Part shown: in pieces, positions 2,696 to 54,973 of the stretch
How the letters are laid out: each line of letters opens with the position of its first letter
Numbering within the stretch: the first letter of the stretch is position 1
From: Mizuhopecten yessoensis
Taxonomy: Eukaryota
Direction of reading: 5' to 3'
DNA: 64,000 nt
NCBI RefSeq assembly: GCF_002113885.1
Contig: NW_018408899.1
Location: 2,118,278-2,182,277, forward strand
Position numbers and translations under genes: made by a program
Notes under the pieces: model-generated
What the model was told of the DNA's origin: nothing
Databases searched by the model: none
The model's input: the letters and a program-made list of their open reading frames with translations, nothing else

Positions 2696-2738
2696 CACAT
2701 ATCAGATCAAAGTTGACTGTAAAAGAGTTGTCTGCCCT
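2696..2738 (+). repeat. Left terminal inverted repeat (starts CAC)
   Basis: Inverted match to 8911-8955; 26 of 27 nt identical over ACATATCAGATCAAARTTGACTGTAA plus the adjoining base block. Confidence 0.85.
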
Positions 2739-3759
2739 TTGGTCAACTTCGTCACGTTTCGCCTATGCATTACCGGCTCTTAAAGTCAGATTGTTAAGCA
2801 GTCCTTGATATATTGACTTGGTATCGTTTATTACTCCCGATTGCAGTTAACTGTGTTTATTTCGAATTGAACGAATGTGTTTGCATTTACATCAGGATCA
2901 GCTACACGTCGTAAAATTGTAAGTAAAGCCATCCGATCGAGTGGTTTTGCCAAAGAAAAGGCGGCGTTTGGTGAGAGGGTAGCCCAACAATTTATTATAT
3001 TTAGAAACTGTGAACAAGCCAATCACTTAATACCTTTGGAATGACATCATTGGAAATCACAACTATTCAGCCAATCAGGTTGGAGATAGATATATCTAAA
3101 AATAAATCCGTAATTTCCTCGTTTTCTTTAGTTGAACGGCAACTGGTGCTGGGTGAAAATCATAGCCAAGAAAAAATTCCAGTCTAACAATTTTATTGGC
3201 ACTTGACATATCACATTTTAAATCACAGTTTACATATTACAACCGTTCCTTTCCGGCGAAATAAAAAAAATACACACTTAGCAATTAACAATTAATGTAT
3301 AACACTATTTGTAGATAAAAATTAAAAATAATAATAAAAAAACAAATGAACACATCACATCAGAGATCTCTTTTAGGTTTTGACACAAGAGGACAGATTG
3401 TTAAGAAATAAAAAGCACAATTTGTAGATAAATCAATGTATTAGAAAAAAATACTTGCAACATTTAACAAAAACAAATAATACAGTGTAAAATCTCTTAC
3501 AATTTACAATGTGCTTTCAACAACTTGATTTATACATATATGTATTGCCATGGAATGTTACTTCATATATGCAGGTCAGGTATTACTTCATAAAAAAATA
3601 AATAGCATTATATTTCATAAAGAAATAACATGTGCTATAAACAAAGCAAACACATACCCTCACACATATGTAACTAGTAAGTTTTCTTAACTTTCTGTCA
3701 CGTTAAATACAGGATTACCAACAACAAATCTTTTTCAGCTTTTCTGTTCCGTGTATATG

Positions 3760-5874
3760 TTATGACTTACCACAACTAATTTTATTATGATCTGCACCAC
3801 CACAACATGAACATTTCAGTGTCTTTGATTTTTGCCTTTGTGAATTTTCCAAGATTGAGATTCTATTTTGTTTTTCCATGATCTGGCGCAATGCTAGTTG
3901 AGGTTTATGACAGCTGCCTCGAAAGTATTGTTTTGTGATGGTGTCATTTAATTTTTCCAGTCCTTGTTGGGTAAACGAAGAAATATCTCCATGACGCCTG
4001 ATTAATTCATGTGCATGACATCGAAGAATGTGAATGTAAGGTGTGATGTCCCGGGACTGAAAGGCTTCAACATACAGCAAACACCACTCTTTTGTCCGTT
4101 CTTCTAATTCATCAGCATCAGGAGTTTCAGATTTCATAATTTTCTCAATTTGAGAAAAACCATCCCATACTTTCTGCAAAATTTCTGCTCGTCCATCATC
4201 TGAAATGAGATCATTTGCACAGAATGATTTCATCAGTTTCAGTTTTTCTGGGCCAATAAGATCTCTGTACTCAAGGCGCTTTGTATCCCGGTTTACAGAG
4301 AGCGAGAAATGTATTCCCAATTGTTCCAAAACAGTTTCTAATTTTGCGACATGTTGAACTTTACTTCTGTCAATCACTCCTGTGTTGAAGGTAGTGTTTC
4401 CATTTATGTTATCAAGTGTTCTGAGCTCTGCTATAAGCAGATTGAAAAGTTTGTCTGTAATTCTTAGAAACATGTGCAAAGGGTCCACCACAACCCTCAG
4501 TGGACCAATATGTGGGAACAGTGGGGGATTAACTACAGAAAATGCTTTTTTACTAATTTTTTTGCGAGCTTTCAGACAACCGTCAGGGCATTCATACAGA
4601 GACCTAGCACCCTTGGTTACATCCTCCATTGACCATTCTAAATCTAATTTACATTTTTCAGACTTACTGCACTTGCAATACACACAGAAATATTCTGAAG
4701 CTATACAAGGTATTCCCACTGCAACCAAGAGAAACTTATAATCTCCACCAAGGAGTATTTCAATAGTAAAATCCCTTCCATCAACAGTGATAGATGAATC
4801 CTGTAATTCCCCAACTTCCTGTCGTAAATCTCTAAGTCCATCAGCAAGCTCACTGTAAGCTTCCTTCGAATTCATCACACAAAGAGGGTAGTTTCCACTG
4901 GCAGCTCTGCATCTCTTCTCATTGATCACTGTGAATGACACATTTACAACGTGCAGACGTTTACCAACATTTGTACCATCTCCTGATAACTTGATTTTGA
5001 TTTTTCCATCAGGTGCAAATTTATTATCTTCTGCAGTTAATGAATTCAAAACTTGCAAAAGTTTAGTTTTCAAGGACTGTTGGACTCCGAGGCCATTGGG
5101 AGTATCCACAATCTTAAATCCAGTATTTAGCTTATTCACATATTCCTGTAACACATGACGCCTTGGTAATTCTTTACAATACATACTAAGTTCGGCATAT
5201 GCCTCTCTGCTGATATTGAAAGTGTCTAAAATATAAAGCAATGCACTCAACTCATCAGAGTTTTCCTCCATGTCTTGCTTCTCTTTACTTTCTCTGAGCA
5301 CCAACACTTCTTTCTTGCCATTTTCCCTCTCAACCGATACAGACAAAGGTTTTATATTTTCTTTATCCAAGAATTTCAATGACTTTTTCACTGTTTCTCT
5401 CTCCACCTTCCTTCTTTTGGACTGACCAGACTTTGTAAGCTCAGAAAATTTCCGACCAAGTGGCTTTGAACATTCTGGTATGTTATTGTTTTTTACATTA
5501 AGTAAGATAGTTTCTGTTAATTTTTTATTTTCTTCTTGACATTTTAGCAACATTTCTTTATGTTCTTTAAGCACATTTTCACATTCATGTCTATCTACCG
5601 GAGCTTGCCATTCAAATGCAGACGAGGAAAGTTCAGAAAGAAATTTCCTGAATTGGAATCCACCTAGTTTACGTTGTTTTTTTGCTTTGTCTTTCAGCTT
5701 AAAAATTAAAGACTTCAAATTTTTCAAATCACTTTCAGATGGATTCACTTTTACAAAAATTTTGTCTTCAATTTTTCTAATGACCTGGCGAACAAAGTAA
5801 TCATTCATAGGTTTGTCTCGAAACTGATCATTATCAATTATTTCAAACAGAATCTTTTTTGAAAACAAAACCAT
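3760..5874 (-). CDS. RAG1/Transib-like DDE transposase, 704 aa, uninterrupted
   Basis: Motifs: NBD-like GRKFSELTKSGQSKRRK, SGD299G, GGD378YKFL, C397xxC400, DPLH467, ITPYIH615ILRCH620, QQGLE640KLN, and C-terminal CSCCGGADHNKISC (Cx2Cx4Hx4C). Order and spacing parallel mouse RAG1 D600/D708/C727/C730/H795/H937/H942/E962. Confidence 0.9.
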   Translation of the reverse strand: MVLFSKKILFEIIDNDQFRDKPMNDYFVRQVIRKIEDKIFVKVNPSESDLKNLKSLIFKLKDKAKKQRKLGGFQFRKFLSELSSSAFEWQAPVDRHECENVLKEHKEMLLKCQEENKKLTETILLNVKNNNIPECSKPLGRKFSELTKSGQSKRRKVERETVKKSLKFLDKENIKPLSVSVERENGKKEVLVLRESKEKQDMEENSDELSALLYILDTFNISREAYAELSMYCKELPRRHVLQEYVNKLNTGFKIVDTPNGLGVQQSLKTKLLQVLNSLTAEDNKFAPDGKIKIKLSGDGTNVGKRLHVVNVSFTVINEKRCRAASGNYPLCVMNSKEAYSELADGLRDLRQEVGELQDSSITVDGRDFTIEILLGGDYKFLLVAVGIPCIASEYFCVYCKCSKSEKCKLDLEWSMEDVTKGARSLYECPDGCLKARKKISKKAFSVVNPPLFPHIGPLRVVVDPLHMFLRITDKLFNLLIAELRTLDNINGNTTFNTGVIDRSKVQHVAKLETVLEQLGIHFSLSVNRDTKRLEYRDLIGPEKLKLMKSFCANDLISDDGRAEILQKVWDGFSQIEKIMKSETPDADELEERTKEWCLLYVEAFQSRDITPYIHILRCHAHELIRRHGDISSFTQQGLEKLNDTITKQYFRGSCHKPQLALRQIMEKQNRISILENSQRQKSKTLKCSCCGGADHNKISCGKS

Positions 5875-6021
5875 TTCAAATACAGTTTGTAATCCTACAT
5901 GTACCTAGGATAAAAGGAAGTTGTAAATGAACATCATAACTGAATACCACTGACTGAAGTGTTCAATGTCCAAAAAACACACAATAGGTTACCTAGAAGT
6001 GTTGTTGAATCAATTGAATTT

Positions 6022-8892
6022 TCAAATTGAATCATTGTTTAACAGATTCTGAAACATATTTTTGTTGCCTGGTTTCTTCACAAATGAAAAAGTTAGTTGG
6101 CTACCACGGTTCATATAATCTTCTTCCACATGGTCCGGGAACAATAAAAAATCTTTCAATGCTTTCCTTTGCCCTAACCAGTACCTGATGGTGGATGTAT
6201 CGATGAAAAACGAGTCACCTTGCTCATTTAAAATCCTATAGTCAAAACCGACTCCCAGTAGCCGTTCGAGGTCTTGTCTTTTTGCTATCCGATACACCTT
6301 ACGTGTTCTCGTCGCTTTGTGGAGTGTTCCACAACATTCCAATGGTATGAATTCCTCTGAAGTCATATACTGGTGCAAAATAATCTTGCTGTCACTTCGT
6401 CCTGGTGAAAGGGATTCTTTTATATTGATTTTTAAGCTTTGGATCTGTGTAGAATGATGTAGAGGTGTTGATTTTACTGCACTTTTTTTTATGTATTCAT
6501 CGTATCGATGATGCCATCCTGGAAAAAAAAAGAGCAAGCAAATAGTTAAGACCAACAAATAGGGTATTTAGGGTCTGCTATAGATAATGTAGATCTACAT
6601 TATACACAAAGTGTTTAAAAACTTCAAATTATAAAATAACACAAATTGACCTACCAACCATACATTTATTGTATTTGTAAACATATATTTTTGGCTTAAT
6701 AGTAATAAAACTAGTACATAGAACTTATCACACACATGGGGTGGGGTGGGGTGTGGTGGGCGAGGCGGGTCGGCTGTACTGTGTGCTTCAGTAGTCAGTA
6801 TGCTATATGGATATATATAGCTATGTATTTGTACATCCTGTACATGTTCTGCTTTTAAAAACAGTGAACTTGAGATTGAATGACAAATTATACAAACTCA
6901 TATTGCATATGAAATTACATGACAAGTCATGTATCTATATATGTGTAACAGTGTATCTATGTGAAAACTCAGCAATTTTATATTTATATAACATCCATAA
7001 AACAAAGGTGTGTCCACTGCCTGTCCAGACTGCAGACAGACAGATGAATGGACACCATGGAATTATTGCTGTTGGTCCCTTCCATTTTCAAGTGGGGCCC
7101 TTATTATTATAGAATATTAAACATTCCTATTGGTTTTTAACTCAAGGATGTTATTTATTAAGTTATTTCTATATAAACCAGGAATTTGAACTTTTTAATT
7201 TAAATTTTAAAGCTGGCTGATCAAAAGCATTTCTGAACAAAATCTGAAATCTACAGAAAACCAATTCTAATATTTATTCAAATACTTTAATATATTAGCA
7301 AAGAAAATCCTGTGAGCAATTGGTCATTTACTGTTTAGAGCATTTTTTTTTCAAAAACAAGAGGACCTTTTCATTTCATGTAAAATTAAAAGAAAATTGA
7401 AATATAGGCACTATATTATATATATACATATTTTTATCATTTGCATCGCTTTATTCTGTGTGGCCTTGAGCTTAAACTTTTCATTTTAAAAAAGACACAT
7501 GTACATATTACACATGCATGGTAATGTATATATACAATTAAGTTTGTCAACATTCTAGTGACTATAATTTACCTATGTAGTGAACCTTTACCATATCCTT
7601 ATACTTGTCATCATCAACAACCTCAATCGGATAAAACCCTGCTGTCCAGCTACGTCTTCTGTTACTACTTGACGTGATGGACGTGTTCGGTGGATTGGCA
7701 AGGTCACTGCAAAAAAAAGTTTTACATATAAATGTAATTTCTCAGCCTACCAGTAGTTTGGTTTCAACAAATTCTATTTCTAGCCAAGTCTTTTCCAGGT
7801 TGCACAGCATCAGATACATATGTAACCGGTTATATACGTCTCTGACAACATGATGTGCATTTGTACAATATTGATTATTATATTTTAGTAATTAAGCTAA
7901 TTTAATTTTGTTAAATTACTCATGTACATACATCAGTAAGGAGTACATGTACCATGATATTATCATTTTTTATTTGTTTTTAAGATTGTTTTATCTGCAC
8001 AGCATATGAATCTATAATGATGCACATCATCTATTAGCAGAGTTCTCTGGCCCCTACGTATACACCAGACTCAGACAATTTGACAGATACCTGGGGTGGA
8101 CATCTTTTAGCTATCTGTCAAAATGTTTAGGTCTGGTCAGGCTAACTGTGTATGTCATCTATGTTTGTAAAGATAAGATCATGATTATTTATTTTAAAGT
8201 AGGACTTTATTATAGGTCCCCGAGTAGGAAAAAGCTATATCCTGCACTCCTAGTATCTTCCTGCACTCCCGGATCCAGAACTTATACCAGTATTAAATTC
8301 TTAGCTCGAGGCATTAATATATGAACATTGACAACTGAAGAAAAAGATGCCAATGTGAGTTTCTGTCAGTCCATTTCAATTATGGAATTTTAAATATCGT
8401 ACACTGTTAAAGTGTTTAGACGGTCTCATATCAAAATCAAAGTAATGAACCCAGGAATCACAAGAATTCATTTGTTGCCATGTATCATTTTAATTAACTC
8501 AAGAGCATGTATATATATCATTATATGTCATTAGCTTTGTGCCGTTTGTAAAGAAATCATCCAAAAGTATTATTACACAACTGTCACCTCCTAGAACACC
8601 TAATTGTGACAACTGCACTCAAATTGAAAGAAGATGAATTCTGCTCTATCTCTCTTAGTCGTATATTACCGGTAGCAAAATTGCCCGGACACCGGCTTCA
8701 CTTCACTCGATGGAAATGTAATCCATATTAATAGTGATTAACATGAAATATTGCCACTCAGTAACGTATATTTTGTGAACTGATATAATAACTTACTTAC
8801 GCATAGGAAGACATCTGATTTCTGTCCTTTGAAACTATCTTTTTTGGACGAAGTTTAAGCGCAGCCGGTTCCTTCTCAGCATTCGTCGCCAT
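6022..8892 (-). CDS. Transposon accessory protein, ~240 aa, with an N-terminal chromo-barrel/Tudor-knot motif and an uncharacterised C-terminal domain; exons 8892-8801, 7706-7573, 6518-6022
   Basis: AAAATGGCG start. Canonical GT-AG introns with matching phases (2, 1) give an open 723-nt CDS. The motif FYPIEVVDDDKYKDMVKVHYIG|WHHRYDEYI is only assembled across the exon 2/3 junction. Confidence 0.8.
7804..7851. mobile_element. P-element-like excision footprint (17+17-bp TIR remnants, 7-bp near-TSD)
   Basis: ACAGCAT | CAGATACATATGTAACC-GGTTATATACGTCTCTG | ACAACAT; same TIR sequence as 1381-1405. Confidence 0.6.
8064..8144. mobile_element. Degenerate small foldback/MITE remnant in accessory-gene intron 1
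   Basis: ACCAGACTCAGACAATTTGACAGATA ... TATCTGTCAAAATGTTTAGGTCTGGT inverted repeat. Confidence 0.45.
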
Positions 8893-8910
8893 TTTGATGG
8901 AAACTTTTAC

Positions 8911-8955
8911 AGGGGAGATAACTCTATGTTACAGTCAATTTTGATCTGATATGTA
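8911..8955 (-). repeat. Right terminal inverted repeat
   Basis: Reverse complement matches the left TIR; the terminal base reads T instead of C. Confidence 0.85.
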
Positions 8956-9529: not shown

Positions 9530-12500
9530 ATGGCTGGCATCAGAGGTAAACAGCAAGTGCTCTGTCATATTTATCATTTAATGTTTATGCGTTGCAAACT
9601 TTACGATTTCAGAAGCACGTGCCTTTTGTTTGTTAGCTTTCATTATTAATATATGATGTTCGTCGATTTTGACGATTGGTTAAACAGATTTTGAAATGTT
9701 TTATGTTGGTTTTCAAACAAGTCGGATGAGTGACAGGTAGACTCACCGTAGAGTCACAAGAGATATACCTGCTATAGAATGTCTGTCACATGAGAGCATT
9801 AGTCATAAAAAACATTTTTTCATAGATATTTTATGAAAATTGTGTATATACCTTATACAAATACAAGTTTTTCTTCTATGATAGATTTTCCTTTTTCCAT
9901 CAGAAAGAGAAATAACAATTTTTTGCACATTTGAAGATAAAATACTGCTACTATTGTGTACTAACTAGATCTGTTTTGTACATGTTTATGTGTATATTAC
10001 CTGGTGAATCTTACTATATGAACACCGACAGCTTTCAAGACTTATGATGCAAGGTTTAAAAACAACATTTTCGTTGAAATCAACGAGTCGTGTTGTTACT
10101 CAACTGATCAAATTGATGGATTTGAAAAGCGCATAGAAAATTTCAAACATTACATGATAACATGGCATCATTCTTTTGTTGTTTGGTTCGAAGTTTTTCT
10201 GGAAATCCAGTCGAACATTATGAGGATATTTGTTTGGGGTTTCACGTCTTTGCAACAGCTACAGTCATTTGATTCGACAGGTTCTAAGGAGACACAGGAA
10301 AATATAGAGATCCGAAGTGTTGTAAAAGGGCACGGAATTATGTTATCTAAGTCCGTGAATAGGGTCAGCAGATCAATTTAGTTTTCTGCATTGAAAAATC
10401 AATGTCCCATTAAGCAGAATTAAGATGTAGAAAAAACCTGATTCTGCAGGGGGCCCCATGCATATATAGCGCAACACACATACCTCCATACACAGAGTTA
10501 TCACCCTTTCTTTCAGATATATTTTTAAAACAAGTTTAAAACAACTCTTCAGATAGTCATTTTGGCTATAAAAGCTCAATATCCATCTTTATAAAGCTCT
10601 GTACTGCACCTAACTAATGAGTCATTACAGGTACTGTTAATATAACGCATCCTTGAAATTTAATTCAAGGGGTTATGCTCACTTACGTTCTCAGCCCCTG
10701 GAATATATCATGTCAAAATAGAAGTCTCGTTGTGTGCCACCTTAAGGATGATACAAGAAGACCAATTTCATCCTTCAATGTGTGTCAAAAGTGTCGTTGG
10801 ACAGTGTAACAGTAAAACTGACTGTCTTTGATGTCGGCTGTCACTCCTCTAGATCTAACTGTCAATTCAGATGATAGGTATATCAGCCTAGCAATTGGCC
10901 AGGCTTTTTTTCCCCCTGAAACCAATCAAATAGCTAGCTGTGTGCCTTCAATTTTGCCATGACATATTCAGGGGTTGCAGAGAACATACTGTAAGTGTGC
11001 ATTACTCCTGGAATTTTGAGGATGACGTAAACATGATAGGTAACCAAGGCAACCAGATAGGTAGCTTGCTATATAAACATCATAATGCAGCAGCTGGTTC
11101 ATTGCCATTTTCCCAGTTCTATGTTTGATTTGTATACTAACGTGCTATAAATCAATATTTTATGAAACTATAAAGCAGCAGTAATTTATACAAATTGTTT
11201 TAAGTTTTCAATGTCGATATAGATACCTAATAAGATATGTATTTTTTTGCGGATTGTATGTAATTTGTCTCCATATAACCATTTAAATATAAAATGAAGT
11301 ATTTAAAAATCTTGCTTCCTACTTACCCTAAGCATAATTTATGAACTGAAAGCAGAAACTCAATAACTCTCATGGTTGACCAAACCAAAAGTGGAGACAA
11401 CAAATATACGTGTATACGATTAGTATATTTATGTAGTCTTTGATGAAACAAACAAATAATTCATTAATTACAACTAAAATTAATCATGCAATTAGAATCG
11501 AGAGACACATGGATGCAAATCTTCATAACTTATAATAAGCTTAAATTTACAACTAAGGCAACATTTTTACTGTGTGATTCTTTCAAGGATTAAAAAGAGT
11601 TCAAGATTATCAATGAAAATTTTATGTTTTTTGGTGTTATAGATATTTTTTTTATTTAAATTGGGTGCAATTAAACTAAATTGTTGTTCTTTTTTTATTT
11701 TTCATTCATGTCAATTCCATCCTGTCAACAAACAGCGTAAGTATTTATTATCTTTAATTCCAATCAGACTTCTTTGTTAGCTTAGCATTCTTTTCTTAAA
11801 AGAAATATGACATTAAACTGAATAATTATTTCCCCTTAAGTAGTTACTACAGTTATGCTAACAATTTTCACCAATTTCTTGATTTTAACTCAAGAACATT
11901 TCTTTATGATAAAATCTTTTTGACAGAAATTGAATACACAATTGGTCTTTTAAAACTAAAGACTTAGATATTCATCATCAGGGATAATTCAAAAATTGAC
12001 TAAATTTCTTAATACTGGTAAGGTTTCTTTTCTTCTATCCTGTCAGTATGACTCAATATAGATGTTGTTATCTTGCATTTGGTGTTAATTGATCTACTTT
12101 CTCATTGTGATGCTAATGCCTTAATTATTTTCCAGGTTGATAAGCCTTGCATTTGCAGCTGCGATAGGTATCACATTTTTGGTGTTAGGATGTGCCCTCC
12201 CACAGTTCAAGTAAGAATAATCTGATCTAACATAAATACATTTGTGTGTCAAGCTTATTTTTAACATTATCTAAAATTGTTGAATGAATTACAGGTATAC
12301 TGGTACATTAATTTATACCAGACATGTGTGTTTCTTGTGTGTAAAATTATATGTATCTTAAAGGCAAAAAGTTCTCTGAACAGCCCTAGGAATACCAACT
12401 CGAGCCATTGTAATTTCAAAGTAGAACAATATATGATATGTACCTTTGACTTTACACTCTTGGATTGTTATATATTATGAATTGGGAAATATCACAAAAA

Positions 12501-15332
12501 AATATTTGTTATTATAAGTATTGAGTAAACTTTTAAATAGAATTTCCACAAAATATCAAACCAAACTAAACCATAACTGTGAAAGCATTTAATGATGATA
12601 TCAAAGTTTTACTTTCTACACAAACAATGTACGTATTAAATGTGTCGCAACGTTTCAAGACCGACGGGTCCCTTTGTCAAGCTATGACTGAGTGAGCCAT
12701 TTAATGGTGTTTTGGTTTCTTTACAGCAATTGGTGGCCCCTGTTTGTGCTGTTTTTCTACATCCTGGCCCCTCTGCCGATGACCCTGTCCAAGCGATGTA
12801 TGAACTCATTTGACTCGTCCAGTAGTGCCTGTTTAGAAATGGCTATCTTTGTTACTACAGGGATAGTTGTGTCATCGATGGGGTTACCATTGGTATTGGC
12901 ACATGTCAGTGTGGTAAGTATTAGGTACATTAAAAAAGTTGAAAAATTAAGGCTACAAATATGCTAATTCCATGTTGGTCAAGTAATCGGACTTAGTCCT
13001 AATGATATTTTGTTCGTTTGTTTATGTTTAACGGCCCATCGACGGCTGTGGTCATTTAGGGCCACCTAATGATATCAATGGCCCTAATGATATCATTGGG
13101 CCAATATGGCATTATCTAATTAATGACACTTTAATTAATTGTCTTTCTAAAATAGCAGAAAAAGTTATTAATTTTAGTGTTCAAATGTCAGAGCTGCGTT
13201 CAGTTGGCATTCATTTCAGTATTGGTTCATGATCAGTTTGTTTTGTATTGGCCCAGTTGGTCGATAATGGCCAAGTCCTAGCCATATTGGCCCAGTTGGT
13301 CAATAATGGCCCATTCCTAGCCATACTGGCCCAGTTGGTCGATAATGGCCAAGTCCTAGCCATATGGTCCAGTTGGTCGATAATGGCCCATTCCTAGCCA
13401 TATTGGCCCAGTTGGTCGATAATGGCCAAGTCCTAGCCATACTGGCCCAGTTGGTCGATAATGGCCAAGTCTTAGCATTATTGGCCCAGTTGGTCGATAA
13501 TGGCCAAGTCCTAGCCATATTAGGCCAGTTGGTCGATAATGGCCCATTCCTAGCCATACTGGCCCAGTTGGTCGATAATGGCCCAGTCCTAGCTATATTG
13601 GCCCAAATGGTCGATAATGGCCCATTCCTAGCCATACTGGCCCAGTTGGTCGATAATGGCCCAGTCCTAGCCATATTGACTCAGTTTGGGCACAGTTTTC
13701 CCATATTATTATCAAGGTGTGAATAGTAAATTTATTCAATATTACATAAACACGGGTACTATATACATGTAATAATGTAATACATGTAATAATGTAATAC
13801 TTACACATGTAGTATATGATAGGCTTATTAGCCAAGGGCCAGTATGGCAGACCAAGGCCTAATAACTTGGCCAATATGGAATAAGCTTGTAAATAACACT
13901 ATCATATAGGTGTATATGTGGGGTTATTAGTTGTGGGCTAATATAACGGACCATGGCTAATAACTTGGCCTAATAGGGATTAAACTTATTATCAAACCTT
14001 CCTATAGTACAATTATAAAAACTTGTGGCCATGGGTGAAGACTGAGGCCTACTAACTGGGTCAATATTAAATTAGCTGATAAATAACACTTTTATTGATT
14101 AACTTTCTAAAAAAGAAAATTAACCATAATTCAACATATTCCACATTATTTGTTTAGTTGATTTATCCCTATCATGTATGGATAGACATTTTATTTTTTC
14201 ACGCTCCCCTTTATTGTCATTGATTGCCATGAGATTGTGCAGCTTTTCAAATGAAAGTCAGTTTAAGTCACTTTTGATACATGTTGATGACATTGTGTGG
14301 TAATACTTCCAACCCAACATCACCTCTCCTTGGATTTCTACTCCAAATGTCACGTTCAACGAAGAACTTCGAATGTGAAGGCCATTGTATATGTAGATTC
14401 CAGCACCATACCTATTCATTGATGATAACTCTAGAAATGTTAGAATGACAAGGGATGAGTTGGATGGAGCAAATCTTGATATTGATCAAGTTTGTTCTTT
14501 ATTGGCCCAGTTCATCCAATATTGCCTCAGTTTATTGGTGATATTGAGTGGGTATTTTGCCATATTTGTATCACTCCTGTTGTAAATATAAGTATATAGG
14601 CTTAATCGTACAAAAAGAGGAAAATGAAAGGGACTTTGAATACAAAAAGGAAAATACTTGGAATTAACATTAAAATACATCTATATTTCAGAATAAAGAT
14701 CTAGGGTTATCCATCGAAACTTGGAAAAGAAAATGAAGCATGTGTTATCAAAAGCATCTTATAATTAAAGAGTCGCCAAATTAACAAGATCTAGAGGCTA
14801 AAGGAGATTAAACACTTATTTGAGTAATACGGAAACAAACATTTGTTTTAGATGGCAGCCATGATAGCCACCTTTGATTCAGATTGATGATTGGCCAATA
14901 ATTGGTATTGTGTATTTATAATTCTGACAAATTTTCTGCTAAACTGACAAAATTAAACTAGATAAGTGTATTAATAAATTTTCAAGATGGCAGCTGTGGT
15001 AGCCATTTTGGATTCACAATTGAATTGGAGGGAAAAACCCCAGCTTAGTCAGGATTGTACGATATTCATTCTTACAATGTTAAGAATTGTAGAAAGACTA
15101 ACTAGAACATTTGGGAGGAAGAAAAAAAAGAATATTCAGGTTATGAATGTCTTTCAGAGTTTAGAAGTTTTTCCATACCTGGGCCAGATAAGCTAATACA
15201 ATGTTGGTTTATTTTCAGATCCAGTGGGGAGCATGTGCGTTGGTGCTGTCAGCTAACATTGTAGTGTTTTTGACAATTCTTGGCTACTTCTATGTTTTCG
15301 ACAGTGATGACCTTGACTATTCAATGTGGTAA
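9530..15332 (+). CDS. LEPROT: Leptin receptor gene-related protein / endospanin (Vps55 family), 130 aa; exons 9530-9545, 11736 (1 nt), 12136-12210, 12727-12913, 15219-15332
   Basis: Spliced product [48 protein letters not shown]...ACLEMAIFVTTGIVVSSMGLPLVLAH...IQWGACALVLSANIVVFLTILGYFYVFDSDDLDYSMW closely matches LEPROT/LEPROTL1. Splice sites are canonical. An acceptor at 9494 implies an upstream non-coding exon. Confidence 0.95.
13250..13690. repeat. 39-bp minisatellite (~11 copies) in a LEPROT intron
   Basis: Unit GGCCCAGTTGGTCGATAATGGCCAAGTCCTAGCCATATT; the 3n period produces spurious repetitive ORFs. Confidence 0.95.
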
Positions 15333-16232: not shown

Positions 16233-16514
16233 CATAGAGGTTTTATTTTTGCTATAATTGTGACCTAAACATTTACTCAGTACATAAACCAAACAAATGT
16301 CTTGCCTTCTGATAGATGATTAGTTATGATATATATATTAACCAGCTTAAGTGTTGCATGAAATTTATACCCTGAAAATTTGTTCCAGGAACAAAAATGT
16401 GTATTTTTGACCTCATGAAATTAAAGTGCTATACAGTAATACAAAAATTGTATATTTCCTTATGTGACGCTTTAAATTTATTGTTCGTTTTGTTAAATGG
16501 TCAGCACAAGGCTT

Positions 16515-17785
16515 GTTTAGTTTCAGTACACAGACATGTACTGGTATGATATTGTGCTGTTTCAGTACACCGACATGTACCGGTATGATATTGTGCTGTT
16601 TAGTTTCAGTACACAGACATGTACCGGTATGATATTGTGCTGTTTAGTTTCAGTACACAGACATGTACCGGTATGATATTGTGCTGTTTAGTTTCAGTAC
16701 ACCGACATGTACCGGTATGATATTGTGCTGTTTAGTTTCAGTACACCGACATGTACCGGTATGATATTGTGCTGTTTAGTTTCAGTACACCGACATGTAC
16801 CGGTATGATATTGTGCTGTTTAGTTTCAGTACACCGACATGTACCGGTATGATATTGTGCTGTTTAGTTTCAGTACACCGACATGTACCGGTATGATATT
16901 GTGCTGTTTAGTTTCAGTACACCGACATGTACCGGTATGATATTGTGCTGTTTAGTTTCAGTACACCGACATGTACCGGTATGATATTGTGCTGTTTAGT
17001 TTCAGTACACCGACATGTACCGGTATGATATTGTGCTGTTTAGTTTCAGTACACCGACATGTACCGGTATGATATTGTGCTGTTTAGTTTCAGTACACCG
17101 ACATGTACCGGTATGATATTGTGCTGTTTAGTTTCAGTACACCGACATGTACCGGTATGATATTGTGCTGTTTAGTTTCAGTACACCGACATGTACCGGT
17201 ATGATATTGTGCTGTTTAGTTTCAGTACACCGACATGTACCGGTATGATATTGTGCTGTTTAGTTTCAGTACACCGACATGTACCGGTATGATATTGTGC
17301 TGTTTAGTTTCAGTACACCGACATGTACCGGTATGATATTGTGCTGTTTAGTTTCAGTACACCGACATGTACCGGTATGATATTGTGCTGTTTAGTTTCA
17401 GTACACCGACATGTACCGGTATGATATTGTGCTGTTTAGTTTCAGTACACCGACATGTACCGGTATGATATTGTGCTGTTTAGTTTCAGTACACCGACAT
17501 GTACCGGTATGATATTGTGCTGTTTAGTTTCAGTACACCGACATGTACCGGTATGATATTGTGCTGTTTAGTTTCAGTACACCGACATGTACCGGTATGA
17601 TATTGTGCTGTTTAGTTTCAGTACACCGACATGTACCGGTATGATATTGTGCTGTTTAGTTTCAGTACACCGACATGTACCGGTATGATATTGTGCTGTT
17701 TAGTTTCAGTACACAGACATGTACCGGTATGATATTGTGCTGTTTAGTTTCAGTACACAGACATGTACCGGTATGATATTGTGCT
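16515..17785. repeat. 44-bp near-perfect minisatellite (~29 copies)
   Basis: Unit GTTTAGTTTCAGTACACCGACATGTACCGGTATGATATTGTGCT. Confidence 0.97.
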
Positions 17786-25459: not shown

Positions 25460-28400
25460 TCAGGAAACCTCCAAGTCTGCCATGTTAAGAAGCCTGTAAG
25501 CAATATCACGTTGTAAAGGTCTCTGTAACGGGTGAGCTAACAGCTGTGCCATTTGATCATATAACTTGGTTGGATTTCTGGCTGCTTCAAAGATGTAACT
25601 CTGTCCTTTTTCATCCAAGTCACAAATACAGTCAAATATTTGCTGAAAAGAAATAACCATATTTTAATCAAATTAATAGTTTTATTTCAATCTCATTTTT
25701 TTCAAAAACAGGTACATATTTCGATTTTTTTTTTTAAATTCAAAAGAATTCTGGTGATCTCTTCTTTTGAATTTTGATTACTCTTATGGCCGGACTAGTG
25801 AATTCCATTTAGGAATACATCAACTGGGGTATGGAGAACTAAACATACACTAGCGGATGCTGTGAACACAAACAAAATCGTAAGGTGCAAACTTGTCTGA
25901 GCAATATTTTTATGGAACATTTATATCATTTTCATCAAGTAATGTCTTAATGACCTAGGCAGAAGAATGAGGACAAAAGAAACGGTTGATTGACAAACTG
26001 CAGGGTGTACCATAATACCATCAACACTCTGACTCTACTTTATGTTGTTCTTATACTAATTTTCTCACACATAGATAACAAAATTCCAGTAAAAACTTCA
26101 GCTCAAACTCACATGATACAATACAAGATAGTGGCGAAGATAGGGCCAGACTCAGCAAGGATCATAAAATTGTCTTGGACTTCAAACAGCAGATGTTTGC
26201 AAAAGATCTATTTTAAGCTAACGTACGGGAACATACATTACTTACATTTAGTGTATATGGATGTACAAAAAAACTACATGTAAATGAAGTCAAATTCTTA
26301 TATAAGTATGAAACTGAAAGTTTAGACATCACTCCAATTTGTACTTATATCCACATTGTTTCATGATTGTAGAGCCTGTTTACCGACCACATGATCGTCA
26401 AGCCCTGGTTACCCTGCCTCCGTGATGGAGTTTTTACCTATCAAATGACGGTGGGGCCTGTACTTTCTCCCACAATTGATTGAATTGCCTCTCGTTTAAC
26501 CTGTTCAAGATTTCTCTGCATCCCCCTAGGGTATGATTTCTCTGTTACCCTGTAGGGTATGTCAGATTGCACGCAGAAAGAAACAATATCATGATGTCAC
26601 AGGAACAATCAGACGTGACATTATAATCAGCTCTTGATTGCAGAGCCGGAGGATATGCAAATCAGGAAAAAAACATTACTTTTTACTCGGTATTGGAATG
26701 AAGGGAGAACAATAAGTATCCCCTTCCTTGAGGGTGTAACAGAGACATCTCCAACACTCAGGGATATTATTTGGTTGTCTAACCCTCGACAGAATCACAG
26801 GTCTGGTTAGGCAAACAAACCAATCACCCCTATGGTTGGCGATTTCTCTGTTGAACCCTCAAGGAAGGGGAAGATTCTTTTAGTCTACCCTGTCTCCATG
26901 ATGGATTTTTTACCTACCACATGATGGTGGGGCCTGTACTGTCTAGCCTGTCTCCATGATGGAGTTTTTACTTACCACATGATGGTGGGGCCTGTACTGT
27001 CTAGTGTCTACCCGTCTCCATGATGGTGTTTTTACCTACCACATGATGGTGGGGCCTGTACTGTCTAGTGTCTACCCGTCTCCATGTTGGTGCTTTTACC
27101 TACCACATGATGGTGGGGCCTGGACTGTCTAGCCTGTCTCCATGATGGAGTTTTTACTTACCACATGAAGGTGGGGCCTGTACTGTCTAGTGTCTCCCTG
27201 TCTCCATGATGGTGTTTTTACTTACCACATGATTGTGGGGCCTGTACTGTCTAGTGTCTGCCCGTCTCCATGATGGTGTTTTTACCTACCCCATGATGGT
27301 GGGGCCTGTACTGTCTACCCTGTCTCCATGATGGTGTTTTTACTTACCACATGATGGTGGTGCCTGTACTGTCTAGCCTGTCTCCATGATGGAGTTTTTC
27401 CTTACCACATGATGGTGGGGCCTGTACTGTATAGTGTCTACCCGTCTCCATGATGGAGTTTTTACTTACCACATGATTGTGGGGCTTGTAATGTCTACCC
27501 TGTCTGCAGGATGGAGTTTTTACTTACCTCACACTTGTTGTCTTCAGAGGGAGGCTCATGCACATACAGGGCATCAACAAAAAAGTATGGCGAGGAATCC
27601 AGGAAACGGAACATCTGAAACCAAATGATTCGGGTCAAATGCAATTTAGTCAGGATATCTGTAACAGTTTTGAACCCAACATGTCTTGTAGATAGAGAAT
27701 AATACATGCCTTTTTCCATATCACACCCAGTATCAACCCGAGACTGCAATATCAGCACAAGGGCCGAAGGCCCGAGGGCTGATATTGATCGAGGGTTGAT
27801 ACTGGGTTTGATATGGAAAAAGGCATGTTTTATTCTGTTTATTACATACTTACTAATAAAAGCTACTATCTTAAAATCTATTTTTCTTTTGAAATATTGA
27901 AAAAACGAAAAATTTCCAAAAGGGGTGTGATACGGGTTTTGCGGGCTGATACAGGTTTTGGGGTGTGATACGGCGGGGCTGATACGGCTTTTGGGGTGTG
28001 ATACGGCGAGTGCTGATATGGGTAAGAGCAATTGTATCGTATCGCATATACAAACAAGAGGCCCAGAGGGCCTGTATCGCTCACCTGAATATGTTTAAAA
28101 TAATTGGTATGAAGTAAAGATATAGCACTCCATGGTAGGTGCTGTAAGTACATATGAAATTTCAGAAAAACCCATCCAGTACTTGAGATATAAAAAATTT
28201 CAAACAGAGCCCCACCCCTATGACCCTGGGTCATACCCACCGTTTATACAAATTGAGTCCCCTTGGCCCAAGGATGCTCCAGACTAAATTAGGATAAAAT
28301 CCCTACGGTAGGAGAAGGATTTTGAAGGTTTTACCTATTTTCCCTAATCGTACCCGCCCATCTGTCCCAAGGGGGCCACACCCACCATTTATACAAAATG

Positions 28401-31400
28401 GAGTCCCCTTGGCCTAAGGATGCTTCAGACTAAATTTAGTCAAAATCTACTTGGCCGTTCAGGACTAGTAGCGTTTTAAAGGAAAAGTTGACGGACGAAC
28501 GGACGGACACCGGACGCTGCGGTATGGCATAAGCTCACCATGGTCCTTTGGACCAGGTGAGCTAAAAACCTGTATCTATTATCTATTAGTAAGTATGTAA
28601 TAAAAGATGTTACATGCAAACAGTTTCATTACACTGCAGCAGTCTTTTTCAAAGCATCTATGTAGACAAATATTTGATTAAATTTTACAAATAATTAATG
28701 GAGCTCAGGTTTTCTCTTTTACACAGTACTGAATGTATATCATGTAACCAGCAAGTACCTCTTTGTCAGCCATGTTGATAGTTCCCTGTGATCGCCCCAG
28801 TAACAACAAGGTCCTGACAATATATGGGGGTGGCAGTACCGCAGGGTCACCAGACACTTGTGGCAACTCCACACGGGAATTTCTGGAAACAAACACATTA
28901 GGGTAGAATTATCGCACAAAAATATTACAAAACTTTTGAAATCTGTATGAAGTGAATACTACTGGGTCGGTGAAACGTGAAACTCTCTAAGACTGAGGTC
29001 CAAATATTGAATGTCAAAAAGTACATGCCCATCTTGGAAGGAAATTTCTCAATTTTTTTATTTTGGTGAAACAACAACCATATAAAAACTTATTCTGATA
29101 TGGCATTGACAAGTTAGAGACAACAGGACCTAGATCATTAAATGATTTAATTTAGGCTGTTCTATTAAGCTGCAAACATTTGTCATGTGATGTTTAACAT
29201 TAATATCACAGCGGATGACAAAATCTATGGACCAAAATCTATAATAATCATAATAATAATATACAGCATTTATCTAGCGCCCTATATAATTTGTAAAATT
29301 ACTCTAAGGCGCTTTACAACATATAGATAATAGTAATGGTTATAATTGTGAAAACAAACAACAAAGGCTTGCAATCACTTTCATACATTTAACAAGCAAT
29401 GTGCACATAATTGAACAAATAAAAGGGTGGTATTTACATGACGTCTTTGCAAATATTCTAAAATGCAGACGTGAAGAGGTGAGTCTTTATGTCCCTCTTG
29501 AACTTGGCCAGGGTATTCGACTTCCTAATAGCAGATGGTAAGCTATTCCACAACGTAGCCGAAACCCTCCCAAAGCATCTGTTTCCGTAGGTCACAGTAC
29601 GAGATTTTGGGACACACAACAAAGATTCTGACTCCGACCGCAGTGATCTTGACGGCTGATACAGGGTAACAAGTTCCTGTAGGTACTGAGGAGCTGTTCC
29701 ATTCAGTGCCTTGTATGTGTATACCAGAATTTTGTACTGCGACCTGTATCGTACAGGTAACCAGTGCAACGAATAAAGCGCAGGTGTGATGTGCTCTCTC
29801 TTTCGAGTACGAGTAACTAGCCGTGCTGCAGTGTTCTGAACCCTCTGCAGACGACTAGTTAGTTTNNNNNNNNNNNNNNNNNNNNNNNNNNNNNNNNNNN
29901 NNNNNNNNNNNNNNNNNNNNNNNNNNNNNNNNNNNNNNNNNNNNNNNNNNNNNNNNNNNNNNNNNNNNNNNNNNNNNNNNNNNNNNNNNNNNNNNNNNNN
30001 NNNNNNNNNNNNNNNNNNNNNNNNNNNNNNNNNNNNNNNNNNNNNNNNNNNNNNNNNNNNNNNNNNNNNNNNNNNNNNNNNNNNNNNNNNNNNNNNNNNN
30101 NNNNNNNNNNNNNNNNNNNNNNNNNNNNNNNNNNNNNNNNNNNNNNNNNNNNNNNNNNNNNNNNNNNNNNNNNNNNNNNNNNNNNNNNNNNNNNNNNNNN
30201 NNNNNNNNNNNNNNNNNNNNNNNNNNNNNNNNNNNNNNNNNNNNNNACTGTCGTCGTTCACTCAGGTATGACTGTATCCAGCATAGTGCGGTATCAGTCA
30301 CTCCATAAGAGTGTTCCAGACGTTTATAAAGTATGCCATGGTTGATGACGTCAAATGCAGCTGACAAGTCCAGCATGACAAGCACCGCTCTGCACTTGTT
30401 ATCCAATGCAGAAGCTATATCACTATGTACACGTAGGAGGGCCGTCTCAGTAGAGTGTCCCATGCGGTAGGCCGATTGCATGTTGTCATGGAGACTGTTT
30501 GCATGGAGATGAACCTCTAAATGTCGGGACACAACCTTCTCCAAGATCTTAGACAGAAAAGGCAGATTTGAAACTGGGCGGTAGTTTTTGAACTCCTCCT
30601 TGTCCATTCCAGGCTTTTTTAACAATGGTCTGACATGTGCCTTCTATGGACCTGGCAGTTTAATATGGACGTTATTTGAAAAAGTTTAGATATGTACACG
30701 CACATGTGTACCCTCCCTCAACAAAGAACATTTGTCCAAGACCAGTTACACACAGCTTACATGTTTACACTTGCAATGCAGGGGATGGTTTTTGAAGAGA
30801 GTTACATGTACATGGTCTGCTGGAATATACTTCATTTTATATGCAGGTACATGTATAATTATCAAACAATGCATGATAATCAATGAAAAGGGTTGTAAAC
30901 CCTTTCAACACTGTAGATTATAATGGACTCATCCAGATAAATGTATGGTAGAGTCTACTAAGCTACCTAGGGGTGAAAGGGTTGATCACAGATGTGATAT
31001 TTCTGTTGAGCTTTAACATGATTACAATGATTTTGCTTACACATGTTACAGTTAAAAGATTTTTTTTTTTATCTGAAAATGTACCTTTTTTCTCAGCACT
31101 ATTCTTTAAATGCAAGGTTTCAAATTCTGCCATGTGCTACAGTCAAGTCTTATGATTTACACAAAGCAGAATTTTAGCCCTGATGTTTCATTTTTATCTG
31201 GGACTGCATAATAATGATTCCTTTGTGGAACTGAAGGAAATATCTAAACTCTTCGTGGGTACGCTTCAAACAAAAATATTTTATAAAATTTCTATGTTAA
31301 GTTACATATAAGGACCAAAATATGTGGGACTGAAGGTTATATCCAAACTTATTGGTGGGTACTGTCAAAAAAAATTATAAATATATTTGATAAAAGTTCT

Positions 31401-40168: not shown

Positions 40169-49721
<9,553 letters not shown>

Positions 49722-50406
49722 GGATATTTCTTGTGTGTGATGTTGATGCTTCATTCAAGAAACTTCTAATCATGCTTTTTAGATAAATATTCATCCAAGA
49801 TGCCTGTTTCTATGAAATAATGTTTTGGAAGAACAGTCTTTCCATTGTTACTATGACAGCAGGGCTGTTGTATTATGTAAGATTTTTTTTTAATTTTTTT
49901 TTTTATGTGAAAAGTACATTTATCTGACAAATATTCCACATGCATGATTGGTTTGTAAGTGAGTGATTCAGGGTTATACAATGGTAATGTTGTTGTGCAA
50001 TTAACTTGCAAAAGAGTTTAATACAACAGTGTTTTAGTAAAGAAAAATAAATGAAATACGATAGAATGTATATATTTTAGTGGGTTCATTAGATTTTCAT
50101 AAAGACTAAGTATCAGATGAATTCAGATTTTAGTAATCTGTACACTGCTAAATACAACTAATTTTGGTATTAAAGAACTTATGTAATTTCAGGTTAAAAT
50201 TAAAAACATACAAGCTGGAAAAGTGTATTCAGCTATTGTTGGTTTCAGTCATCTGAAACTTTCTCATTCAATTAAATTTGAGATTTTGAGTCCACTGTTT
50301 CAAGATTTACAAATTTGAAGACATTTCATTAAGTCCTATCTTAAAATTGGACCTTTTAGAGTGTCTCTGAAAAAAAGGAATATTTATGTAAGTGTAAGGT
50401 AGCTTA

Positions 50407-51580
50407 CACCCTTGACTTCTGATAAACACTGGGTGGATACTAAAGTTTGTCATAGTAACATAGCATACACCCTTAACTTCTGATAAACACGGGGTGGATA
50501 CTAAAGTTTGTCACAGTAACATAGCATACACCCTTAACTTCCGATAAACACTGGGTAGATACTGAAGTTTGGCACAGTAACATAGCATACAACCTTAACT
50601 TCTGATAAACACTGGGTGGATTCTAAAGTTTGTCACAGTAACATAGCATACACCCTTAACTTCTGATAAACACGGGGTGGATACTAAAGTTTGTCACAGT
50701 AACATAGCATACACCCTTAACTTCCGATAAACACTGGGTAGATACTGAAGTTTGTGATAGTAACATAGCATACACCCTTAACTTCTGATAAACACGGGGT
50801 GGATACTAAAGTTTGTCACAGTAACATAGCATACACCCTTAACTTCCGATAAACACTGGGTAGATACTGAAGTTTGTCATAGGAACATAGCATACACCCT
50901 TAACTTCTGATAAGCACTGGGTGGATTCTAAAGTTTGTCACAGTAACATAGCATACACCCTTAACTTCCGATAAACACTGGGTAGATACTGAAGTTTGGC
51001 ACAGTAACATAGCATACAACCTTAACTTCTGATAAACACTGGGGGGATACTAAAGTTTGTCATAGTAACATAGCATACGCCCTTAACTTCTGATAAACAC
51101 TGGGTGGATTCTAAAGTTTGTCACAGTAACATAGCATACACCCTTAACTTCTGATAAGCACTGGGTGGATTCTAAAGTTTGTCACAGTAACATAGCATAC
51201 ACCCTTAACTTCTGATAAACACTGGGTGTATACTAAAGTTTGTCACAGTAACATAGCATACACCCTTAACTTCTGATAAGCACTGGGTGGATTCTAAAGT
51301 TTGTCACAGTAACATAGCATACACCCTTAACTTCTGATAAGCACTGGGTGGATTCTAAAGTTTGTCACAGTAACATAGCATACACCCTTAACTTCCGATA
51401 AACACTGGGTAGATACTGAAGTTTGTGATAGTAACATAGCATACACCCTTAACTTCTGATAAACACGGGGTGGATACTAAAGTTTGTCACAGTAACATAG
51501 CATACACCCTTAACTTCTGATAAACACTGGGTGGATACTGAAGTTTGTCACAGTAACATAGCATTCACCCTTAACTTCTG
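50407..51580. repeat. 61-bp minisatellite (~19 copies) downstream of the TMEM259 stop
   Basis: Unit CACCCTTAACTTCTGATAAACACTGGGTGGATACTAAAGTTTGTCACAGTAACATAGCATA. Confidence 0.95.
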
Positions 51581-52880: not shown

Positions 52881-54973
52881 TTTATTAGCTCACCTGGCCT
52901 GAAGGGCCAAGTGAGCTTATGTCGTGGTGCATCATCTGGCGTCATTATTTTACTTTAAACAACTTCTTCTTAATAACCAAAAGGCATAGGGTGATGATAT
53001 TTGGCCAGAAGCAAACTGGGATGAAGGGCTACCAAGTTTGTTCATACAAATGACCTTCACCGATATTCAAGGTCACAGGGGTCAAATATGTTAAAACCTT
53101 TAAACAACTTCTGATGAATAACCAAAAGACACAGGATGTTTATTTTTGGCCAGTAGCATGCTAGGATGAAGGGCTACCAAGTTTGTTCAAATGAATGATC
53201 AAATATGTTCAAAATCTTTAAACAACTTCTTCAAATATGTTCAAAATCTTTAAACCAAAATAAGCAGGATGCTGATATTTGGCTGGTAACATGATGGGAT
53301 GAAGGGTAACCAAGTTTGTTCAAATGAATGACCTTGATACTTATTCAAGGTCACAGGGATCAAATATGTTCAAAATCTTTAAACAACTTCTACTTAATAA
53401 CCAAAAGACCAAGGACGTTGCCAGTAGCACGCTAGGATAAAAGGCTACCAAGTTTGTTCAAATGAATGACCTTGAATTATATGCAAGGTCACAGGGGTCA
53501 AATATGTTAAAATCTTTAAAAGTCTTCTGAATAAACATAAGGCCTAGAATGTTGATATTTAACCAGTAGCATGCTGGGTACCAAGTTTGTTAAAGTAATT
53601 GACCTTGATCCATGTTCAAGGTCATATTTGGTCAAATATGTATAAACATTGAAATGACCTAATTTCAATAAACAAAAGGATAGGGTGGTGATATTTTGCA
53701 AGTTGCATCCTGAGATGAAGGGCTTTAAAAATTGTTCAACATAAAGACCTTGTTTGACTTTCAAGGTCACAGGGGTGAAATGTTTTTAAATCTTTTAACA
53801 GGTTCTTTTGAATGAATTTTTAGGTCACCTGAGCTTTAGCTCGAGTGACCTATTGCTATCCGTCTTCGTCCGTCGTCCTCCGTCGTCTGTTAACATTTTA
53901 CATTTCAAACTTAAAGTCAAGTTCTGCTGGGCCGATTGAACTGAAAGTTGGTAGGAATGATCGACTCATGGTCCTGATAAAGTGTTGTTATTTTTCGGGT
54001 CGATCAGAAATCCAATATGGCCGCCACGGCCGCCATTTTGAAAAACTATTTCAAACTTAAAGTAAAGTTCTACTTGGCCGATTGAACTGAAACTTTGTAG
54101 GAATGATCGACTCATGGTCCTGACAAAGTGTTGTTATTTTTTCTGGTCGATCAGAAACACAATATGGCCACCACGGCCGCCATTTTGAAAATACCTATTT
54201 CAAACTTAAAGTCAAGTTCTGCTAGGTTGATTGAACTGAAAGTTGGTAGGAATGATCAGCTTATGATCCTGACAAAGTGTTGTTATTTTTTCTGGTCGAT
54301 CAGAAATACAATATGGCCACCACGGCCGCCATTTTGAAAATACCTATTTCAAACTTAAAGTCAAGTTCTGCTGGGGCGATTGAACTGAAACTTTGTAGGA
54401 ATGATCGACTCATGGTCCTGACAAAGTGTTGTTATTTTTCAGGTCAATCAGAAATCCAATATGGCCGCCGTGGTCGCCATTTTGAAAAACTATTTCAAAC
54501 TTAAAGTCAAGTTTGACTGGGCCGATTGAACTGAAACTTTGTAGGAATGATCGACACATGGTCCTGACAAAGTGTTGCTATTTTTCGGGTCGATCAGAAA
54601 TCCAATATGGCCGCCACGGCCGCCATTTTGAAAAACTATTTCAAACTTAAAGTAAAGTTCTACTTGGCCGATTGAACTGAAACTTTGTAGGAATGATCGA
54701 ATCATTGGTCCTGACAAAGTGTTGTTATTTTTCGGGTCAATCAAAAATACAATTTGGCTGCCATTATACTTAACTATTTTTTACTCAAATTGGTACATAT
54801 TTCAACAACAAAAATAAATACTGTAGGACTCAGGTGACCGTTAAGGCCCATGGGCCTCTTGTTTAATAACAAATACTGATATTTTTGCCTGTAACTTTAT
54901 TTTAGATCACTTTTAAGGTTACAAGTGTGAGATTTACACCAGGTGAGCGATGCAGGCCCATTTGGCCTCTTGT
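52881..54973 (+). mobile_element. Helentron-like (HINE) element interrupted by a second nested HINE (53817-54862)
   Basis: Outer element: 5' TTATTAGCTCACCTGG, 3' CAGGTGAGCGATGCAGGCCCATTTGGCCTCTTGT. Inner element: TTTTTAGGTCACCTGAG...CTCAGGTGACCGTTAAGGCCCATGGGCCTCTTGT with ~6 repeats of ~146-149 bp. Confidence 0.8.

Follow-up and report, generated by a model that had tools for sequence, protein, structure and literature searches.

In the literature, Transib transposons are single-gene elements with CAC termini and 5-bp target duplications, and a gene for a transposase partner is known in RAG-like (RAGL) elements alone, not in Transib. One classification places Chapaev and Chapaev3 (CMC) inside the Transib superfamily; Chapaev termini are invariably CAC...GTG, and the target duplication of Chapaev3 is TWA. 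The origin of adaptive immunity still poses the questions of how RAG1 gained RAG2 and why such a transposase needs a partner that reads chromatin. Here we analyzed an element in a stretch of 64,000 nt from the scallop Mizuhopecten yessoensis (contig NW_018408899.1, positions 2,118,278 to 2,182,277 of the forward strand; the whole stretch is referred to below as the window, and coordinates are those of the window). This element encodes a RAG1-like transposase of the aspartate-aspartate-glutamate (DDE) type and, next to it, a smaller protein with a putative methyl-lysine reader, hereafter the partner, an arrangement that recalls the RAG1-RAG2 pair of antibody gene rearrangement.

A conserved gene pair in a two-gene DNA transposon

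The whole element covers 6258 bp (2697 to 8954), with both genes on the minus strand, and it is bounded by terminal inverted repeats of about 43 nt that flank both of them. On the 5' side of the transcription unit, the repeat (8911 to 8954) begins ACATATCAGATCAAA when read inward; the repeat on the 3' side occupies positions 2697 to 2738. The 25-nt core of the repeat was found in exactly two exact copies in the window, inverted relative to each other, where the chance expectation was 0.

The partner gene is made of three exons on the minus strand, separated by canonical GT-AG introns. Exon 1 (8801 to 8892) runs for 92 nt from the ATG at 8892, through 30 codons and 2 nt, to a GTAAGT donor at 8800-8795. 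Exon 2 (7573 to 7706, 134 nt) is preceded by the acceptor TTTTTTTTGCAG and followed by a GTAAAT donor, while exon 3 (6022 to 6518), separated from it by intron 2 (7572-6519), is preceded by the acceptor TTTTTTTTTCCAG and ends with the stop codon at 6024-6022. The three exons encode residues 1 to 30, 32 to 75, and 77 to 240, respectively, of the 240-aa database protein P0002, and their phases are compatible, the split codons GC/T and G/GA giving A31 and G76. P0002, of which the per-exon translations are exact substrings, is an NCBI RefSeq model of M. yessoensis, "uncharacterized protein isoform X2," for which three loci are listed. The gene model proposed by the sequence-only reading (exons 8892-8801, 7706-7573, and 6518-6022) was thus borne out in its boundaries, its phases, and its identity to RefSeq isoform X2, and the string FYPIEV...VKVHYIGWHHRYDEYI that it quoted is found in the protein exactly as written. 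The gene is not hidden, as had been claimed, since RefSeq already has a model of it, merely without a name. An exhaustive protein search returned 161 cluster representatives at an E value of ≤1e-3, 40 of them at ≤1e-10. Because these proteins, mostly 190 to 250 aa long, align with the partner end to end, the gene is beyond what chance would give, and we consider it confirmed that the three exons constitute a real gene.

The transposase (P0003; 3760 to 5874, minus strand) is encoded by an intact 704-aa frame directly downstream of the partner gene, on the same strand in this scallop copy; in a second scallop copy, the transposase is identical at 702 of 704 residues. Searched alone, the 704-aa protein had no match in Pfam, and the only solved structures that it matched were RAG1 chains. 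A profile built from 12 transposase sequences matched RAG1 (E value, 6.8e-8) and amphioxus RAG1L (2e-6), with nothing else meaningful among solved structures even at an E value of ≤10; no solved Transib transposase, such as that of Helicoverpa zea, was returned at that threshold. The Pfam family RAG1 was matched by 2 of the 12 relatives. Residues D299, D378, and E640 as well as C397 and C400, which form a CxxC pair, are invariant in all 12 sequences. In the alignment with RAG1, GGDYK stands opposite GYDEK, CVYC opposite CTLC, YIHILRCH opposite YLHKTLAH (H-x4-H), and GLEK opposite GNES. D378, the CxxC pair, and E640 are thereby aligned with the matching RAG1 motifs, which would correspond to the second catalytic aspartate, the zinc module, and the catalytic glutamate, with D299 as the candidate first aspartate. 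These alignments indicate that the gene next to the partner encodes a DDE transposase of the RAG1/Transib-superfamily type, with a predicted catalytic triad and zinc module. The frame ends with a CCHC zinc knuckle (3760-3801; residues 688 to 701), which is present in 9 of the 12 relatives, weakly matched solved structures of retroviral nucleocapsid knuckles, and is unusual for a RAG1-type enzyme.

We then considered related loci. Eighty metagenomic loci (five of which, L002 to L006, are one locus sampled five times) were retrieved with the transposase profile, and the partner was sought in them by tblastn with 55 family proteins and with a hidden Markov model of the family. The partner gene was found in 48 of the 80 loci. 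In 43 of these, it is an intronless gene that converges with the transposase gene from the opposite strand, 115 to 800 bp downstream, while in the remaining 5 (L022, L028, L031, L064, and L075) it precedes the transposase on the same strand, like its scallop counterpart. Thirty of the partner genes have open frames of nearly full length, and both frames are complete in 17 loci. Among the 32 loci lacking the partner, 23 have less than 900 bp of sequence beyond the transposase match. Both proteins have diverged to about 30% identity without separation of the two genes, and the three pairs of loci most similar in their transposases are also the three most similar in their partners. One 3.8-kb relative is present in copies that are 95 to 99.5% identical, with sharp ends and at least six different flanks, and behaves as a mobile unit carrying both genes. 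Viral contigs scanned with the transposase gave nothing. Taken together, these data show that the two genes form a conserved pair of a two-gene DNA transposon. The sequence-only reading had already seen in the partner an accessory gene of a mobile element, and the enclosing inverted repeats, the NCBI gene shared with the transposase, and the linkage in 48 of 80 loci all agree with that view.

The shared gene is apparent from the RefSeq isoforms, which carry consecutive accessions: X1 is the 704-aa transposase, X2 the 240-aa partner, and X3 (P0001) a 212-aa protein with the N terminus MRN. One 75.5-Mb contig of Argopecten irradians bears the same X1/X2 labeling. At 5905 to 5920 (minus strand), 30 nt before the transposase ATG, a polypyrimidine tract and AG can be read from the sequence as a candidate acceptor of the transposase transcripts (isoform X1). 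We infer that the scallop partner and transposase arise from one transcription unit through alternative splicing. No stop interrupts the transposase frame over the 30 nt from the candidate acceptor to the ATG (5875-5904); immediately before them, the AG of the candidate acceptor itself provides the in-frame stop. As for isoform X3, its start would be explained by an ATG at 8804 together with the second of two tandem donors, GTAAGTAAGT (8791 to 8800, minus strand), which lies 4 nt downstream of the first. An origin of MRN in an exon outside the element, at 12096-12105, was rejected, as ATGCGTAAGT at 8804-8795 and the tandem donor within the element account for it. In same-strand relatives, the partner is in two pieces (L022 265-564 and 929-1297; L075 3042-3385), and the gap is placed differently from the scallop intron, which suggests an independent intron gain following the change of orientation.

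The ends of the elements differ between subfamilies, starting with ACATATCAG in the window, CATATCAAAACC in the L008 group, and ACATG in L007/L058, but all are of the CAT and none of the CAC type. Compared by eye, the CATATCAAAACC terminus shares 10 of 13 positions with CACACCCAAACCT, a published repeat element of RAGL, and 8 of 11 with the consensus of protostome RAGL elements. The junctions examined were 2697/8954 in the window, 8831/12625 in L008, and 997/4932 in L007. The combination of 5'-CAC termini and a 5-bp target duplication that characterizes Transib and RAGL was not seen at these ends, and no target site duplication, 5-bp or other, was found in the window or in six independent insertions of a relative. 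The junctions are palindromic, and a short fixed duplication could be hidden by such palindromic, AT-rich sequence, as for TWA in Chapaev3. Because of the CAT ends and the lack of a visible target duplication, we keep the element apart from canonical Transib, RAGL, and Chapaev.

The partner protein and its two domains

The closest relatives of the partner are found in four scallop species, and further ones are found in an abalone and a sea cucumber. In an alignment of 41 family sequences, H73 and D82 are invariant, and Y74, G76, L104, K109, L112, G164, W167, R170, N173, D177, and F221 mark near-invariant columns. Exon 2 codes for a basic, disordered linker and for a Royal-family domain through its second strand (as far as ...VKVHYI); exon 3 completes this domain (WHHRYDEYI) and also carries the C-terminal domain and the stop. 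The coding span of the Royal-family (chromo-barrel/Tudor-like) domain, at residues ~51 to 90, is 6475 to 7648 (minus strand). Neither the exons searched singly nor the 178-aa raw open reading frame had matches in Pfam, as expected because intron 2 splits the domain; the segment across the exon 2/3 junction was assessed through the database proteins P0001 and P0002.

The sequence-only reading had assigned this segment to the chromo-barrels. The assignment holds at the level of the family profile, which matched, among solved structures, the MBT repeats of L3MBTL3 (E value, 1.6e-10), Eaf3 (2.7e-7), MRG701 (3e-7), MRG15 (1.8e-6), and MOF (1.8e-6), together with ARID4A (in the group from 3e-7 to 2e-6) and Tudor1 of PHF20/PHF20L1. 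In Pfam, where the Royal-family models PF11717 and PF22732 were tested, MSL3_chromo-like was matched by 23 of the 41 members, Tudor-knot by 18 (best E value, 1.4e-9), MBT by 11, and Chromo by 7. For the scallop protein alone it is marginal, the match of P0002 to the PHF20 Tudor having an E value of 0.003.

The same reading had also described an intact aromatic cage, and here it was borne out by alignment and conservation. In a pairwise alignment, W51, Y56, Y74, W77, and Y81 of P0002 stand opposite positions 24, 29, 47, 50, and 54 of PHF20L1 Tudor1, which two papers define experimentally as its methyl-lysine cage. The residue is F, W, or Y in all 41 family members at positions 56, 74, and 77 and in 35 of 41 at position 81; position 84 is aromatic in 38 of 41 as well, and the family shares the motif HY-G-[WY]...[YF]DEW. 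Aromatic residues thus appear to occupy the positions of a methyl-lysine pocket. In the AlphaFold model computed with the family alignment, the mean predicted local distance difference test score (pLDDT) was 87, with values of 93 to 95 over residues 61 to 90, and the predicted secondary-structure elements are compatible with a Royal-domain core.

Four long cellular proteins (P0040, P0116, P0134, and P0157), which combine several MBT/Tudor-knot domains with UBA, DUSP, or OTU domains, are the nearest nontransposon relatives of this domain, and proteins of that type are a possible source from which it was captured.

The C-terminal alpha/beta domain (6037 to 6450, minus strand; residues ~99 to 236) was predicted by AlphaFold to be a compact unit of ~140 aa starting at residue 99, with a pLDDT of >95, and a separate model of exon 3 was concordant (pLDDT, 94.6). 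No relative was detectable by sequence or by fold in Pfam, among solved structures, or with Foldseek, where neither the full model (against PDB and BFVD) nor the exon 3 model (against PDB) gave a match with an E value of <0.01. The top Foldseek matches, START/PYR1-like, were rejected as noise (template modeling score of <0.2; root mean square deviation of ~15 Å). The model and the blank searches are in line with the earlier description of this part as globular yet unrecognized. K109 and R170 are conserved within the domain, and a basic stretch is present at the N terminus of the protein.

Possible functions of the partner

We propose that, within this two-gene RAG1-like transposon, the partner is a cofactor that ties the transposase to marked chromatin or licenses it there, and on the evidence of sequence and models we give this a probability of about one half. 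The aromatic cage would bind a methylated lysine. A histone tail is the most plausible location for it, given that methylation of H3K36 or H4K20 is what the closest readers recognize. The C-terminal domain would dock onto the transposase or onto element DNA, and the partner would in this way direct or license the transposase on marked chromatin. Such a role would be analogous to that of the RAG2 PHD finger for RAG1, or to that of chromodomains or LEDGF for integrases. The steering of integration put forward in the sequence-only reading is likewise tentative.

Several observations weigh against this proposal. Nine loci have room for a partner and lack one, most of them having the most divergent transposases of the set (26 to 28% identity), and codivergence of the two genes is weakly supported (Spearman coefficient of 0.21 over 28 pairs, not significant). 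P0002 alone reached only 16.6 bits with Pfam MSL3_chromo-like, whose cutoff is 28, and the scallop protein deviates at two near-invariant columns, position 84 being Y (W in 36 relatives) and position 167 being F (W in 39). As for the cage, the column of W51 is aromatic in just 4 of the 41 relatives. Concerning the fold across the exon 2/3 junction, on which the sequence-only reading had staked its assignment, the model yielded strands 58 to 64, 69 to 74, and 83 to 86 and a 3-10 turn at 79 to 81; these three strands suit a Royal core, but they do not make a complete five-strand barrel, as no clear first or last strand was seen, and Foldseek searches of the full model against PDB and BFVD found no Royal-domain match. 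Finally, Royal domains may also bind RNA or DNA, as stated in the Pfam description of Tudor-knot and reported for the PHF20L1 Tudors on nucleosomes.

This last point leads to a reading in which the domain binds nucleic acid, namely, element ends or RNA, instead of methyl-lysine; the partner would then be an accessory factor comparable to the second protein of PIF/Harbinger or En/Spm elements. Pfam describes Tudor-knot, matched by 18 of the 41 members, as the RNA-binding knot of a chromodomain, the tandem Tudors of PHF20L1 are reported to bind nucleosomal DNA strongly, and both the basic N-terminal stretch and the conserved K109 and R170 would suit such an activity. We nonetheless find it rather improbable, given that the four cage positions are aromatic in 35 to 41 of the 41 relatives, which is the signature of methyl-lysine pockets. 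Somewhat less unlikely, though still doubtful, is that the partner is a regulator that reads the chromatin of element copies or of the genome and damps the transposase or counters silencing, a role that would resemble that of the second splice products of other transposons. If splicing of a single transcription unit yields either the partner or the transposase in the scallop, it could also set the ratio of the two; a third isoform arises from the tandem donor, and the reader-type domain is conserved. These observations fit activation and inhibition alike. Against a regulator, the partner has been kept with open frames in elements diverged to about 30% protein identity, and the relatives mostly have two separate genes in convergent orientation, not splice variants; both features would be expected of an indispensable subunit no less than of an inhibitor. 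That the partner is an unrelated host gene, or an artifact of gene prediction, standing by chance next to the transposase was suggested by the lack of an NCBI name and by the marginal domain matches of the scallop protein taken alone. This is hardly credible for a gene that lies within the inverted repeats, encodes an identical protein at three loci, has 161 family representatives and models with mean pLDDTs of 87 to 95, and adjoins the transposase in 48 of 80 loci, and the linkage data exclude it.

Carrying the cofactor proposal further, we tentatively suggest that a lineage of RAG1-like transposons from molluscs, an echinoderm, and marine hosts carries its own convergent methyl-lysine-reader partner, a functional analogue of RAG2 not homologous to it, in which the C-terminal domain would be a new fold coupling the reader to the transposase. 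If so, the arrangement that led to V(D)J recombination would not be unique: chromatin readers would have been joined to RAG1-type transposases repeatedly or long ago. A second, nonhomologous partner at the same position and in the same orientation, with a histone reader of another class, would provide an independent natural comparison for what the partner contributes. Literature searches on Transib combined with chromodomain, Tudor, or ORF2 (open reading frame 2), which did not cover Repbase, returned nothing relevant. Apart from any function, the analysis flags a 140-aa domain that is confidently folded in the model and has no structural relative.

The window is AT-rich animal DNA. On the plus strand, a host exon at 12692-12967, 3.7 kb from the element, is Vps55/LEPROT-like (Pfam PF04133; E value, 5.6e-20), and another at 41084-41650 matches Membralin (PF09746; 2.1e-17). 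A fragment of a reverse transcriptase of the long interspersed nuclear element type at 29458-30625 (minus strand; RVT_1; 1.8e-13) is broken by a run of N, and a Ser/Asn-rich open frame at 48957-49721 had no family match. Eight large tandem arrays, with periods of 34 to 186 nt and up to 60 copies, are located at 13246-13686, 16514-17785, 26883-27528, 44326-46364, 46962-47721, 50400-51580, 53902-54763, and 56355-57814; several of them yield long spurious open reading frames on both strands.

Comparison with known systems

Among described systems, RAG1-RAG2 and the RAGL elements (RAG1L plus RAG2L) share with the present elements the pairing of a RAG1-type DDE transposase with a smaller second gene. 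The convergent layout reported for RAG and RAGL is that of 43 of the 48 partner loci, though not of the window or of the five same-strand loci. RAG2 has a PHD finger, and the partner likewise has a domain of a histone-reader class, here of the Royal type; unlike RAG2, it has neither a kelch propeller nor a PHD finger, as no member matches kelch or PHD in Pfam. The transposase, unlike RAG1L, is distant enough to be detected by profile alone, and the elements differ from RAGL in their CAT termini, in the absence of a visible 5-bp duplication, and, in the scallop, in having the partner upstream, on the same strand, and spliced.

Transib elements resemble those described here in having a transposase homologous to the RAG1 core, a small size, and few near-identical copies, whereas our elements have two genes and CAT ends. 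Chapaev and Chapaev3 are likewise widespread in marine invertebrates, but our elements start with CAT and show no visible TWA duplication, no second gene is described for Chapaev, and, by reading, our transposase lacks the Cys-rich N-terminal "Chapa" finger. In En/Spm (CACTA) elements, the two proteins TnpA and TnpD arise from one transcription unit by alternative splicing. NCBI models the same arrangement for the scallop copy; the proteins themselves are unrelated, and most of the relatives use two separate convergent genes.

With MRG15, Eaf3, MSL3, MOF, Esa1, Tudor1 of PHF20L1, and the MBT repeats, the partner shares profile similarity, the motif, and the cage aromatics. Unlike these readers, it is a stand-alone, transposon-encoded protein of 240 aa in which the Royal domain is joined to an unrecognized C-terminal domain, and its predicted structure lacks clear first and last barrel strands. 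Coupling of a DDE-type insertion enzyme to marked chromatin by a Royal-family reader is the principle of the chromodomain of chromovirus integrases and of the tethering of lentiviral integrase by LEDGF/p75. There, the reader either forms part of the integrase polypeptide or is supplied by the host, whereas here it is encoded by a separate gene of a DNA transposon of the cut-and-paste type. The elements described here would thus add the case of a DNA transposon coding for its own Royal-family reader to a strategy so far known mainly from the integrases of retroelements.

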